Origin: Octopus sinensis
Lineage: Eukaryota
DNA: 64,000 bases
Direction: 5' to 3'
Assembly (NCBI RefSeq): GCF_006345805.1
Contig: NC_043008.1
Location: 51,584,001 to 51,648,000 of the forward strand
Below are positions 511 to 63,788 of this stretch, in pieces. The notes under the pieces are model-generated. The model made no database searches. It worked only from the letters and a program-made list of their open reading frames with translations, and was not told the origin of the DNA. The translations under genes were made by a program, and so were the position numbers. Each line of letters opens with the position of its first letter. Position 1 is the stretch's first letter.

Positions 511-604
511 GTCAAGCTGAAGAATATGGAAACTTCCAACACATATTCTTGTATTTATGTTCTTAAACAAAGTATTCCTTACCATGAGTGTTCATTGATA
601 AATA
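511..604 (+). CDS. Gene A exon (second half of extracellular repeat module; phase 0->1), VKLKNMETSNTYSCIYVLKQSIPYHECSLIN
   Basis: Acceptor ttttgctttag|, donor ata|gtaagt. 94 bp open in phase 0. Same length, phases and T/Y/C/V/K/C/N positions as exon 8077-8170. Confidence 0.8.
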
Positions 605-825
605 GTAAGTTGATAAAACATATTTCTTATATCACTTTATTAGAAATTAGGAAATAGTTCTGCTTTGCTGGCTTTTATCAGATGTTATTAAGAAGGAGAG
701 TGATCAAGGTGAATTCTAAATGACTCATGCTGCTGCATTGATATTACTATTAAGAGTTAAATCTTCCTATCACCCACACCAATTTCCAAAGCCATACTAC
801 ATTCATGGTAATATTTCCTTGGTAG

Positions 826-990
826 TATGTGGCAAGCTGGCAGAATTGGGCAAAATGCTTAGCAGCATTTTGTCTGTCATTATGTTCAGAGTTCAAATTC
901 TACCAAGGTTGACTTTGCCTTTCATCCTTTTGGAGTCAATAAAATAAGTACCTGTTGAGAACTGTAGGTCAATGTAATTGACTTATTTCC
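826..990 (+). mobile_element. Degenerate tRNA-derived SINE (same family as 54682-54920)
   Basis: gagttcaaattc B-box-like motif followed by the shared gactttgcctttcatcctttt..aaaataagtacc core. Confidence 0.65.
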
Positions 991-1027
991 TCTTCTGAAC
1001 TTGCTCTTGAAACCAATATTCCCTTGA

Positions 1028-1570
1028 TAGTGTGATAAAAATATTGCTTCCCAACTACATGATTCCAGGTCAATCCCACAGTATGGTTCCTTGGGCAAGT
1101 GTCTTCTACTATAACTCAGGCAGACCAAAGCCTTGTGAGTGGATTTGGTTGACACAAACTGAAAGAAGCCCATTTTGTAAAAATATATATATGTGTGCTA
1201 ACACGGAAAACGGATGTTAAACAATGATGATTATGATCATGATATATATATAAATATATCTAGTCCAATCCATGCTAACATGGAAAATGGACACTAAATG
1301 ATGATAATCATGATGTTGATCATATGTGTGTGTGTGTATGTGTGTGCACACGTGTGCACATCTGCTTCTTTTTGTTCCCCACCACTATTTGACAACTGAT
1401 GTCAGGGTGTTTACATTCCCGTGACTTAGCGGTTTGGCAAAAGAAACTTATCAAATCAGTACTAGGCTTTTAAAAAGTGAAGTACTGAAGATGATTCGTG
1501 CAACTAAAATTCTACAAGGTGTTGCCCCAGCATGGCCAAAGTCTAATGTCTGATACAAGTAAAAAATAGA
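1028..1570 (+). mobile_element. Bipartite SINE-like dispersed repeat (second family)
   Basis: The gcttcccaactacatg...gggcaagtgtcttctactata...aagccttgtgagtggatttgg block recurs at 13345-13745 (+), 26520-26610 (+) and ~63000-63405 (-). Confidence 0.6.
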
Positions 1571-2039
1571 AGATATAAATAGTATGAAAGATTGACATAT
1601 TTTACATCAGATTTGAAATGAAGGAACCAATTGTATGATGGTGGTGCTCATTTATGATCATTTCTCAGACAAGGAGACACAAGCACCCCTGCCACACTCA
1701 CACACACTCATATGACATCCTTCTTTCATTTTCTGTTTACTAAATCTACTCTCAAGTCTTTGTTGGTCAGAGATTATAGTAGAAGACATGTGCTTAAGGT
1801 GCCTTCCTCAAATCTGAACTTGGAATGCTTAAGTTCAAAAGTCAAAACTTCTGATGAATAATAATATTATATTAGGTAATATTGACCAACGCTATTCTGG
1901 TTACATCCCTGTGGCCAGAGTAGTGAGTTGGCAAATTGCCCCCAGAGCTGAAAGAAGCATGGCTAATGACAGCCATAATGTACAACATGAATGAAGAGGC
2001 CAAGTTACTGGAGGCCACAAGGACCCAAAGTATAAACTA

Positions 2040-60229: not shown

Positions 60230-61140
60230 TGAATAAAACAATCTAATACATTCATACACTATCTAACCACCCACAAAGTATCATCAATGGATTGATTAGG
60301 AGGATTTCAATTAGGTTATCTAATTTGTTGGCAAACCAAATAGTTTTTAACAATGTGGTGCCTATTTTTAACGCAGCTTTGAGGAATAGCAGTTTTAAAG
60401 AAGATATATACTATTTTAAATGTATCCTATTCATATACAGATTAAGTAAACTTTTTCCAAATCTAGTGGAATCTGGTATTGATATCTTGCATGAATAAAC
60501 AACCCTCCGAACAACATGACTCCTATCATTTTAGGAGATTTCCTAGGTATCCTAACATGTATAGTAGTAGTAGTAGTAGTAGTAGTAGTAGAGGTAGTAA
60601 TAGTAGTAGTAGTAGTAGTAGTAGTAATAATAAAAATAATAATAATAAACAGTGGCAAACTGGAAGTAAAACAGTGAGAATACGGGAAGTTATATGGTTT
60701 AACTCCGCTTTCTCCCTTCAGGTTAAAAATCTCCCAAAAATGTTTTTTAGTATTGTCGATAAGAATTTTCCTGTGGGCCACAAATACTGCTCTATTTTTA
60801 ATAGATCCTGTCTAAAACTCTTATACTCAACTACACCGAATTTATGACTGATATTCGCAGGGAATAATAGATTTAAGCTTGGGAATAATGGGAATATGGG
60901 TAGCCCCAATACGAGTAGTGTTAATAATAACATATATAAAGTATGCACAGGGATGAATAACAGGAATAAAGCCTGCAATTTATGTCCCTTAGGAAAAACG
61001 TGGTATACAAGACTGAGGTTGTAATAGCCAACCAACCTAAGAAAGTATACATAGGGACTACTATAGACTTTAAAACGAGATATAGAAGACACATGAGCTC
61101 ATTCTCAAACCCAGAAACCAAAAATGCAACAGCACTTTAT
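60230..61140 (+). mobile_element. Penelope-like element ORF remnant (RT C-terminal region plus GIY-YIG endonuclease)
   Basis: ISIRLSNL...NAALRNS, VIWFNSAFS..KNFPVGHKYCSIFNR..LKLLYS..PNL, and VVYK...KVYIGTT.DFKTRYRRHMSSF. Confidence 0.85.
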
Positions 61141-62058
61141 AATCTCAGGCATTATAATGTATGTAGGCATAAGTATTTATCTACGTTTAAGTTTTTTAAA
61201 AAGGAGAAAGGATAGAATCTGAACTTATGAACATTGACTTGCCTTAATAAAATAATAAAAAAATTTTTCCGCTCTCGTTCGATATGACTAATTTAAAGTG
61301 TAAGCATAAAATTCTATATACTTTGACATCTCAGTGCTTCACAGGCTTAGCTTAGTATTTGAACTTATTAACCTTATATATATAAGTTGTAAGTCAGCAA
61401 TCATTGTAAATTATAAATATCATGTAAACTTTTAAACTGTTCCCACCAACATTCTATAGATTCAACTTATTTTAAATTATTTTTAATTATTTAACTATCT
61501 TTAATTATAAACAATCCAACAGTTCATTTAAATGGTAAACTTGATTTAAGTCTTCCTTTCTATTATCCAGTATAGCATCCGTCATTTGATTTTTACAAAT
61601 ATAATATATATTTATTTTTATTTTCATTCACACAAATGTCTTATTTCACAACCTTTTTTCACTCCGCAATGCTTTTTTCTATATCCTTGCAAACTTTTAA
61701 AAAACTATAATATTTTTAAAAAGGACAATAACATTATCTGATATGATTTCAAGTACTGTAAGTAGGAGATATTTTAAACTTTCTCAAATTTAAAAACTAT
61801 TTTAATCAATTTTTGTACATCTGATGAGGGAAATGTGACTATTTGTGTTAGCTGGAAAATTCACCCAATACAAACGTATTCTCCAAAATGATTGTAAGGT
61901 TTTGTACTAATGCTTTTCTTTGGATTGCAATATTGGAGCGCTTGAAATCTGATACCTTGATGAACTTTTTATGCATTTTGTATTCCCATGATAAAGGAAT
62001 TTGACCTACAAATATCTGTTCTCCACTTTGATTTATGTTATATATATGTGTGTGTATA

Positions 62059-62916
62059 CAGGGAGCGATGGGTAAATTGTCACCATTTCCTGTTTTTATT
62101 TCATGCATGTGCATTGTTTGTTTTTGATTTTGTCAACTACACAATACAGTAGGGTCAGTTGGGTACTGTCTGTGAGAAAAATAGCACCATGGCACAATTC
62201 ACTCTACCAGAAATTTGGAAACACACAAGAAGCGATACAAATATTTTACACTGATACAAACATTTCAGAGTGTTTGGGTGTCAATCTGAGGACAGTGCAA
62301 TCTGAATCCATGTACTGAGAGTGATAAAAATCAGACATTTACACAACACAATTGTGTTTGGAGTAACCACTTGTGATGACAACATTATGCCTCTATTCAT
62401 CTTCCCACATGACCTCACACTCAACATGAAGGGCTACATCAAGTGTCTGAAGGAGGTAATGCTGCCCTGGGTCAAGAGGGTGGTGTGGGAAGATCCTATG
62501 TCTGGCAACAGGACTCTGCACCATGCCACACGTGCAGGAGAACCCAGTCATGGCTGTTAGATAATTTCTGCAACCACATCACCCCTAACATCTGGCTATC
62601 TAACTCCCCAGACTGCAACCCTCTTTATTATGTGTTGAACAAGAAACTCTGTGTCACACCAAATATGAAGAAAAGGCTAGGACTATGGCAGCATTCACCA
62701 ACTTAAACAAGGAGACCATCCAGAAGATATGCAGGAGATTCTGAAGTCCTCTGGAGGCCAAGGTTGAAGCCAATGACGATTTTATTGAATGAATTTACTC
62801 CTTAGTACTTCAAGATATTTTTTATCTAATTTTAGTAAATACATCAGTTACAATGCGATATTAGTGTTATTTTCATTTTTGTGTAATTTAGATGACAGTT
62901 TATTCACCACACACTG
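62059..62916 (+). mobile_element. Internally deleted maT/DD37D-type Tc1/mariner element (related fragment at 46963-47108)
   Basis: TIRs cagggagcgatgggtaaattgtcacc / gatgacagtttattcaccacacactg with TA flanks. QQDSAPCH...SPDCNPL[Y] with 37 residues between the second D and the mutated third D. Confidence 0.85.
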
Positions 62917-63745
62917 TATATATGTATATATATATGTGTGTGTGTGTGTGTGTGTGTGTGTATTTCTATTTATCTATAAGTATACACACACACACTTTAC
63001 TCTTTTACATGTTTCAGTCAGTTGACTGTGGCCAGGCTGGACAACCACCTTTAGTTGAAGAAATCGACCCCAGAGCTTATTCTTTGTAAGCCTTGTACTT
63101 ATTCTATTGGTCTTCTTTGCCGAACCACTACATTTCAGGGACATAAATACATCAACATCGGTTGTCAAATGATGGAGGTGGGATAAACACACACACAAAG
63201 ACACACAAATGTATATATATATATATATATATATATACATAAATACACAACAGGCTTCTTTCAGTTTCTGTCTACCAAATCCACTCACAAGACTTTGGTG
63301 GTCTGGGGCTGTAGTATAAAAGACACTGTCCAAGGTGCCATGCAGTGGACTAAACCCTGAACCATGTGGTTGAGAAGCAAGCTTCTTCAAACACAGCCAT
63401 GCCTGTGCATATATGTATATATATATATATATATATATATATATATATATATATATATATATATATATATATATATGGCCTGCTCGCTTAGCCAATGGGG
63501 TGGCGTCATTCGAAAGCTAAAACAATGCGAACGCATTGTGACCAGCGATGTGTAACAACATCTGATGGTCTGGTCGGTTGCGTGATCACGTGATATATAT
63601 ATATATATATATATATATATATATATATATATATATTCCCACACATATATAAATACATGCAGAAAAACACAAATACACACACACATACATGGAAACAAAA
63701 GAAGATAATAAAATGAAAGTAAAGATTAATAATATATGATTTTAC

Positions 63746-63788
63746 CTGATACTGAAAATGATGATTATCAAAAATAAGATGCCAATAA
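63746..63788 (-). CDS. Gene B transmembrane exon (phase 1->2), xIGILFLIIIIFSIR
   Basis: Acceptor ttttcttctgcag|, donor cag|gtaaaatcatata as in gene A. Upstream intron 63790-63920 resembles 13940-14070. Confidence 0.85.

Follow-up and report, generated by a model that had tools for sequence, protein, structure and literature searches.

The question raised by this locus is whether the scattered exons for pieces of membrane proteins that it contains belong to one family of receptors, and what such a family might do. The locus is a stretch of 64,000 nt from Octopus sinensis (CM016870.1 of assembly GCA_006345805.1, positions 51,584,001–51,648,000; this whole stretch is called the window below), and it is identical to the fetched locus of the annotated protein P0004 from offset 30029 onwards. 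A preliminary description had outlined a cluster of at least three diverging paralogues here, named A, C and B, and had proposed that they share one architecture, evolve fast and may form an undescribed lineage-specific family. We found that the window carries parts of three neighbouring paralogues, A (LOC115217915), C (LOC115217916) and B (the model P0033, which overlaps LOC115217841). All three loci are already NCBI gene models, merely unnamed, with no family, domain or function assigned. They belong to a family of predicted type I membrane glycoproteins that is restricted to Octopoda and functionally uncharacterised. The reading that we favour, with moderate confidence, is that these Octopoda-restricted paralogues combine a fast-changing membrane-distal module with a proposed role in recognition and phosphotyrosine signalling.

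Gene A and the exon plan of the family

Gene models were placed on the window by tblastn with Octopus homologues, and the exon joins were then checked against the annotated proteins; a spliced-exon protein search of the window had Octopus proteins as its matches. Gene A corresponds to LOC115217915, which encodes the 448-aa protein P0004. Its last six exons lie inside the window and are 100% identical to P0004:

511–604, forward strand: M2b, second-half exon of module 2 (94 nt, phase 0 to 1, VKLKNMETSNTYSCIYVLKQSIPYHECSLIN; residues 185–215 of P0004, AG/GT flanks)
4612–4844, forward strand: M3a, first-half exon of module 3 (233 nt, phase 1 to 0, N-terminus (N)TVWKIELT)
8077–8170, forward strand: M3b, second-half exon of module 3 (94 nt, phase 0 to 1, ending in EEYGCVNVHKTNSNEYSCKFLN)
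12708–12755, forward strand: stalk exon (48 nt, phase 1 to 1, KEELQSNESYLLIKI; a candidate exon confirmed by P0004)
14073–14127, forward strand: transmembrane exon (55 nt, phase 1 to 2; helix 333–366 of the AlphaFold2 model)
19045–19315, forward strand: cytoplasmic tail exon (90 aa and a stop codon at 19313–19315; YINK, then YSDL, then YEEL)

The first four exons (signal peptide, M1a, M1b and M2a) were located by extending the window leftward, and lie 3–20 kb to its left in gap-free sequence. Joining the ten exons gives P0004 exactly, with AG/GT borders throughout except at the start of the first exon and the end of the last. The exons that the preliminary description had given for gene A were as described; the stalk exon had merely been implied, and the gene start turned out to lie 20 kb left of the window. 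The protein has five N-x-S/T sequons in its ectodomain and seven overall.

From these models the plan of the family is a signal peptide, module 1 (M1a and M1b), module 2 (M2a and M2b), module 3 (M3a and M3b), sometimes a module 4, a stalk, a transmembrane segment and a tail. All ten exons of gene A, the four of gene C and the two of gene B follow it: the signal-peptide exon ends in phase 1, two exons, of phases 1 to 0 and 0 to 1, encode each module, the stalk exon runs from phase 1 to 1 and the transmembrane exon from 1 to 2, and the tail exon comes last. The modules are all-beta and have about 95–110 residues; the second exon of each of modules 1–3 carries a conserved Cys pair, and the module starts share a Trp. 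The tail is disordered and has 60–115 residues, or about 200 in one Argonauta member. The annotated gene A protein therefore bears out the single architecture proposed earlier, namely a signal peptide, about three modules, a stalk, a transmembrane segment and a tyrosine-bearing tail.

Module number varies within the family, as shown by the presence or absence of module 4 (present in most members, absent from A and P0008) and by an internal duplication of M1b and M2a that adds about 96 residues in P0005 (O. bimaculoides LOC106873081) and P0007 (O. sinensis LOC115217897, CM016870.1 at 43.53 Mb).

Taxonomic range of the family

An exhaustive HMMER search with a family profile over 1.84 billion representative proteins (E ≤ 0.001) returned 30 matches. 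Every named match comes from Octopus sinensis, O. bimaculoides, O. vulgaris or Argonauta hians and is annotated as 'uncharacterized' or 'hypothetical'; the other four of the 30 are unnamed short Logan contigs. Gene A is represented by P0004 itself, and the profile also matches gene C (P0023, E 5.7e-76) and gene B (P0033, E 6.8e-11). O. sinensis has at least a dozen family loci, eight of them on CM016870.1, where the positions read are one at 43.5 Mb and the present cluster at 51.6 Mb. A Pfam scan of the A, B and C proteins reported down to E 10 gave no match other than a Sec61-beta row on the transmembrane segment that is due to chance, and the family profile found nothing among PDB sequences at E ≤ 1. 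A literature search on the LOC numbers, octopus immune receptors and hemocytes, and octopus-specific gene families found no description of this family. The earlier suggestion of an undescribed lineage-specific family agrees with each of these searches.

A tree of the M1–M2a region has long branches; its orthologue groups span the three Octopus species, Argonauta falls outside these groups, and A and C have no annotated orthologue.

Fold of the modules

A full-length AlphaFold2 model of the gene A protein, built on a 15-sequence alignment, has an N-terminal helix (the signal peptide), 23 strands in three modules, helix 333–366 (the transmembrane segment) and a tail with a predicted local distance difference test score (pLDDT) of 25–28. 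Modelled separately, module 1 reaches a pLDDT of 92.5 and a predicted TM-score of 0.82 and has seven strands. The top PDB matches of this module-1 model in Foldseek are the PLAT domains of pancreatic lipase (1eth_A) and PLRP2 (2oxe_B), with probability 1.00, TM-scores of 0.53–0.55 over 109–116 columns, a root-mean-square deviation (rmsd) of 4.7–5.1 Å and E 0.009–0.026; the PLAT match is also present with the full-length model. The next rows (C2, LecB-lectin and collagen-binding domains) are weak, those for C2 (Munc13, CEP120, dysferlin) having probabilities of 0.2–0.4, rmsd above 12 Å and no Pfam match. The A, B and C proteins likewise have no Pfam match to PLAT/LH2 (PF01477), and the BFVD viral library gave no match. 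By these models the modules are beta-sandwiches of a non-immunoglobulin (non-Ig) type, PLAT-like at best. The family adds to the known repertoire an extracellular beta-sandwich module that is absent from domain databases.

The same comparisons bear on the possibility that these proteins are divergent immunoreceptors of the immunoglobulin superfamily, similar to KIR or LILR. With the whole ectodomain, Foldseek produced only multi-domain alignments of beta-sandwich strings, and their top rows are PirB/LILRB and KIR3DL1 (E 1e-3 to 3e-2); in addition, the 'Y-x-C' of the second-half exons resembles an Ig F strand. However, the PirB and KIR alignments have an rmsd of about 20 Å and a TM-score of about 0.1, the confident single-module model matches PLAT and reaches Ig-like rows (MHC class I, 5xs3_B and 7dc6_D) only at a probability of about 0.1, and no Ig Pfam match appears even at E 10. 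Modules 2 and 3 also have no Cys in their first-half exons, so the Ig B–F disulphide is absent there. We therefore rejected the reading of the 'Y-x-C' exons as Ig domains on the Pfam and Foldseek results, and regard an Ig-superfamily origin as very unlikely.

Gene C and its missing 3′ half

Gene C is LOC115217916 (P0023, XP_029643495.2), a 212-aa model that extends from the signal peptide through module 1 into the first half of module 2:

35983–35929, reverse strand: signal-peptide exon (55 nt, ATG at 35983 in the context caccATGG, ends in phase 1)
31531–31338, reverse strand: M1a, first-half exon of module 1 (194 nt, phase 1 to 0, A-T-R-W, beginning NIQATRWDVTVCF)
29265–29181, reverse strand: M1b, second-half exon of module 1 (85 nt, phase 0 to 1)
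25898–25693, reverse strand: M2a, first-half exon of module 2 (206 nt, phase 1 to 0, W-T-Q-W, intact GTAAGT donor)

The signal peptide and the first-half exons with phase 1 to 0 and a T-x-W start were recovered as the preliminary description had stated, and the features it described are well beyond what chance would give. The exon joins match annotated P0023 exactly, with the last of the four exons read through its intact donor, so that the coding part of the NCBI model runs on past M2a to 25597 and stops at 25594–25596. The 180 codons of gene C are open, and its four donors and three acceptors are all canonical.

From the promoter up to a point 333 bp short of M2b in gene A, genes A and C run collinear, in their introns as well as their exons. 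Block identity is 75% upstream of the first exon, 86% at the signal-peptide exon (exon and flanks), 82% at M1a, 72% at M1b, 84% over 1172 bp at M2a and 75.6% in the last block. The preliminary description had proposed a comparison of the gene C exons with the gene A modules inside the window; these are not the equivalent modules and their profiles gave no significant match, while the upstream exons of gene A are 69–83% identical to those of gene C in nucleotides, the flanking introns about 83%, and the protein 59% over the signal peptide, module 1 and M2a. The genes originated through local duplications that included introns, and A and C form an inverted pair and are each other's closest relatives.

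Downstream of M2a, gene C meets the following features:

23467–23304, reverse strand: last stretch of gene C intron collinear with gene A (positions 37–178 of the window in A; 75.6% over 164 bp, E 1e-31)
21920–23301, no strand: 26-bp minisatellite (52.7 copies), which abuts the gap and occupies the expected position of gene C M2b
21820–21919, no strand: assembly gap (100 N) that separates the convergent genes A and C and touches no exon

After the last collinear block gene A reaches M2b within 333 bp, and gene C runs into the minisatellite and the gap. The gap lies in non-coding DNA between the stop codon of gene A (19315) and the last exon of gene C (25693) and is crossed by no frame. On its right the minisatellite (unit CACACAGCCACTCCTGCACCTACTGC, 94% matches, with long spurious open reading frames in three frames) extends to the gap border; on its left there is unique sequence (19316–21819), which in a self-comparison of the window matched gene A nowhere in inverted orientation and is therefore not the continuation of gene C. 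The minisatellite probably caused the contig break, and LOC115217916 is a model cut short at the contig end. As for the missing 3′ half, we lean slightly towards its lying in unsequenced DNA rather than having disappeared in a rearrangement whose site the minisatellite marks, because the 180 codons are open, every splice site is canonical and hardly any indels occur in the exons. A candidate exon for gene C M2b at 24737–24650 was rejected, having no similarity to any family member.

The exon sets of C and A in the window are complementary (signal peptide to M2a in C, M2b to tail in A) and the gap lies between them, which could also suggest that an inverted contig at the gap has divided a single gene into these two halves. 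The signal-peptide, module 1 and M2a exons that belong to gene A itself lie in the gap-free sequence 3–20 kb left of the window, and their protein differs from that of C at the identity given above; one mis-joined gene is thereby refuted, and we give this arrangement practically no credence.

Gene B and its match to gene A

In the window gene B is represented by its transmembrane and tail end, which equals the 115-aa model P0033. The features that concern it are:

63788–63746, reverse strand: transmembrane exon (43 nt, phase 1 to 2; common to LOC115217841, P0006)
55390–55096, reverse strand: cytoplasmic tail exon (98 aa and stop; YCTI, YLEL, YKN, YAEP)
13902–14072, forward strand: intron of gene A conserved with gene B (pairs with 63959–63789 on the reverse strand; blastn E 8e-53)
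53004–52954, reverse strand: relic of a B-like tail exon (the last 17 codons, TERSAGIHDSELYAEPT, inside a tandem duplication of about 2.2 kb)

The stalk exon of gene B lies beyond the window at the window-equivalent position 68801–68736 (L002 9944–10009), and its module exons lie more than 15 kb past the right window edge. The stalk and transmembrane exons are common to P0033 and LOC115217841 (P0006, 536 aa, with a gene range of 134 kb). Compared with the tail in the window, that of P0006 differs at three Pro codons and stops early (HPI), which could be due either to an alternative terminal exon elsewhere or to a chimeric model. P0008, the O. vulgaris orthologue of gene B, also spans 133 kb, and its transmembrane segment and tail are 93% identical to those of gene B, a value that, judged without dS, may be low for sister species. 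The exons shared by LOC115217841 and the 115-aa model, together with the cut-short LOC115217916, should be useful for re-annotation.

The preliminary description had reported that the transmembrane and tail exons of A and B agree in splice sites, phases, flanking intron sequence and the first bases of the 3′ untranslated region (UTR), and each of these points was reproduced. The transmembrane exons differ by one in-frame gap of 12 nt, the exon of B being the shorter (43 vs 55 nt), and agree in their acceptor context (ag before TT.TTGG) and donor context (ATCAG or GTCAG before gtaaaatcatata). Around this exon, positions 13902–14186 align with 63959–63687 at 76.5% over 285 bp (E 8e-53). Within that alignment the 230 intron bases on both sides (13902–14072 and 14128–14186) are 79.6% identical without a gap, compared with 69.8% for the exon. 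Both tail exons are preceded by 'gtctattgcag', and the similarity extends into the 3′ UTR (19018–19497 vs 55417–54920, 70% over 507 bp). The proteins diverge as strongly as had been claimed, with tails of 90 and 98 aa and an identity of just 41% over transmembrane segment and tail.

Next to the tail exon of gene B, a tandem duplication of about 2.2–2.4 kb (50695–53004 vs 53060–55149) contains transposon-like open reading frames and a second copy of the gene B 3′ UTR.

Evolution and selection

The paralogues had been described as fast-evolving, and we examined this by comparing exons with introns of the A/C pair (551 exon nt and 2118 flanking intron nt in four blocks) and by the Nei–Gojobori ratio of nonsynonymous to synonymous substitution rates (dN/dS). 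The exons of A and C are more diverged than their flanking introns (78.9% vs 83.1% identity, Fisher p 0.024), above all at M1b, where the exon is 69% and the introns are 85% identical (p 0.0013). Gap openings are distributed the other way, with one in exons (7.5 expected) vs 29 in introns (Poisson p 0.0045). For module 1, dN is 0.335 and dS 0.165, giving a dN/dS of 2.03 (95% interval 1.16–4.62 and P(omega ≤ 1) 0.012 from a bootstrap of 500 resamples), and dN was above the intron divergence (0.19) in every one of the 500 resamples. By region, dN/dS is 0.64 for M2a of the same pair and 1.07 for the transmembrane segment and tail of A and B. These values support the earlier claim of fast evolution. 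The outermost module outpaces the introns around it, a usual trait of recognition receptors. A kept reading frame together with substitutions above the neutral proxy in the membrane-distal module is the signature of diversifying selection, not decay, in this one pair.

A decaying family would explain part of the same data by relaxed constraint; an inverted partial duplication would have produced gene C as a truncated pseudogene, and further debris would lie near gene B. Consistent with this are an overall dN/dS of about 1, the assembled gene C with no exons after M2a and an NCBI model that simply reads into the intron, the tail-exon relic at 52954–53004, and sister species with no annotated orthologues of A or C. 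Against it, gene C has kept 180 open codons and canonical splice sites with a single gap opening, dN in module 1 is above the intron rate and not equal to it, three Octopus species and Argonauta have retained orthologue groups, and the homology of C with A stops exactly at the contig end. We consider decay improbable, and diversifying selection on the distal module the better reading of the A/C pair.

Cytoplasmic tail motif

An alignment of the tails begins with a basic juxtamembrane stretch, followed by a box similar to N-x-S-T-L-Q-D-V and by two conserved tyrosines, the first in [DE]-[IV]-Y-x-N and the second, 18–20 residues on, in an acidic D-S-x-x-Y-[AE]-[ED]-[LP]. The tails of 11 family members contain the pattern Y-x-N-x(14-20)-Y-x-x-[LPFIV], among them the tails of gene A (YINK...YEEL), of gene B (YKNS...YAEP) and of one Argonauta protein; gene C has no tail in the assembly. 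Canonical immunoreceptor tyrosine-based inhibitory or activation motifs (ITIM, ITAM) do not describe this conserved pair, which reads Y-x-N, 16–17 residues, Y-x-x-[LP]. In gene A, YSDL-x4-YEEL is too closely spaced for an ITAM and is not conserved. The transmembrane segments are uncharged. Phosphorylated Y-x-N is the preference of Grb2-type SH2 domains, and phosphorylated Y-E-E-[IL] that of Src-family SH2 domains.

Past the conserved pair, the tail of P0020 (Argonauta hians) has at least five repeats similar to D-I-E-Q-L-Y-T-Q-P-I-K, and one such unit is also found in O. bimaculoides P0009 and O. vulgaris P0031.

Tyrosines of this kind have another possible use, since Y-x-x-hydrophobic motifs also serve as endocytic (AP-2) sorting signals, and for this reason we kept an endocytic or adhesion role as the main rival. 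In that case the proteins would be endocytic, scavenger or adhesion glycoproteins, with the tyrosine motifs as AP-2 signals and the ectodomain used for uptake or adhesion. YEEL, YSDL, YLEL and YCTI all fit Y-x-x-[LIFV], PLAT-like folds often mediate lipid or protein contacts, and the link of the tail tyrosines to kinases and SH2 domains is itself only predicted. On the other hand, the most conserved tyrosine stands in Y-x-N, which is no AP-2 motif, and the motif of the second often has Pro as its last residue (YAEP, YAMP). Both the fixed spacing of about 19 residues and the acidic surroundings are also conserved between Octopus and Argonauta, and positive selection on the distal module fits the chasing of ligands better than housekeeping uptake. 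An endocytic or adhesion role seems to us unlikely on balance, and signalling the better account of the tail.

Proposed function

In the signalling model that we propose, the distal module would bind a variable ligand, which may be microbial, self/non-self or environmental. Its engagement would lead to phosphorylation of the two conserved tail tyrosines, and these would in turn recruit SH2 adaptors, with Y-x-N fitting a Grb2-type adaptor and the second tyrosine, about 19 residues on, resembling Src-family SH2 ligands. The recognition and signalling function as a whole is a prediction.

Several observations weigh against this proposal. The fold match is weak, with no Foldseek row at E ≤ 0.001. 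The mutual homology of the modules could not be demonstrated by hhalign profile comparison (P 0.03–0.2), so their repeat nature is argued only from the exon plan and the fold. The endocytic use of Y-x-x-hydrophobic motifs applies here as well. The overall dN/dS near 1 (1.08 for A/C, and the A/B value given above) is compatible with relaxed constraint, and the signal of positive selection comes from 97 codons of a single paralogue pair. Gene C could be genuinely truncated, and no A or C orthologues were found among the annotated O. vulgaris and O. bimaculoides proteins.

Compared with known receptors, the family resembles KIR and LILR/PirB in general layout: these too are type I proteins with a string of beta-sandwiches of about 100 residues, a short stalk, one transmembrane segment and a tail with tyrosine motifs, and they too are clustered multigene families with birth-and-death evolution and the fastest divergence in the ligand-binding distal domain. 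The differences are that neither the sequence nor the single-module model identifies the octopod modules as Ig, that each module is split over two exons (phases 1 to 0 and 0 to 1) whereas an Ig domain is one phase 1–1 exon, and that the Y-x-N...Y-x-x-[LP] pair with its spacing of about 19 residues is neither an ITIM nor an ITAM and no charged transmembrane residue is available for adaptor pairing. PLAT/LH2 domains (PF01477; C-terminus of pancreatic lipase, N-terminus of lipoxygenase, polycystin-1) share the size and beta-sandwich build of module 1 and are its best structural match. However, module 1 has no profile match to them and aligns at E 0.009–0.026 with an rmsd of about 5 Å, and the octopod module has seven strands (eight in PLAT), a conserved C-x3-C pair and a tandem extracellular arrangement on a receptor. 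Lastly, fester and uncle fester of Botryllus, the FREPs of snails and Dscam-hv are likewise recognition molecules, at the cell surface or secreted, that are restricted to their lineages and diversify rapidly. These are built from known domains (Sushi, Ig, fibrinogen), whereas the octopod family has no known domain, and the evidence for its diversification by splicing or somatic change is limited to the presence or absence of module 4. What is new in the family is the building block and the tail motif, and what is familiar is the receptor logic.

To our knowledge, cephalopods do not have the expanded Ig-type or TLR-type receptor repertoires of many other invertebrates, and we know of little on how they recognise microbes, parasites or conspecific tissue. 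The octopod family is a concrete candidate for such a recognition system, being octopod-restricted, clustered, apparently subject to birth-and-death evolution and to positive selection on its distal module, and equipped with a tyrosine tail conserved between Octopus and Argonauta. More speculatively, it might be an octopod invention, an immunoreceptor with non-Ig, PLAT-like modules that belongs to a self/non-self or chemotactile system, with a diversifying distal module and a new dual-phosphotyrosine tail motif. We hold this only tentatively and think it the less likely outcome; if true, it would be an independent origin of the logic of a variable ectodomain and a tyrosine tail in a clustered multigene family that is known from KIR/LILR and Botryllus fester.

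Repeats and transposon debris around the genes

The window is AT-rich, with a GC content of 27–42% in most 2-kb bins, and microsatellites and transposon debris are abundant. The elements located outside the exons are:

1900–4400, 6260–7600, 10500–11850, 14400–16600 and 20290–20724: retroelement debris in the introns and 3′ flank of gene A
5744–6150, 39153–39548 and 56470–56908: repeat blocks with a period of about 63 bp, 75–83% identical, with long spurious open reading frames
37440–38030, reverse strand: Helitron-type relic located between genes C and B, a 197-aa open reading frame that contains a Pif1 helicase 2B domain (E 2e-15)
40231–40953, duplicated at 44954–46230: 92–94% identity
46221–46504 and 47612–47899: 288-bp inverted repeat with 98% identity
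47890–48276: open reading frame beside this inverted repeat, hAT-transposase-like by eye (LVIDGWT motif), with no Pfam match

The inverted repeat and the open reading frame beside it are probably a young DNA transposon. The debris around gene A includes a gag-like open reading frame with a weak CCHC zinc-knuckle match (E 0.002, below the Pfam cut-off) and open reading frames resembling fragments of reverse transcriptase, one of them with a weak zf-RVT match (E 0.006, also below the cut-off). One element of this debris is present in two copies with 65–68% nucleotide identity.

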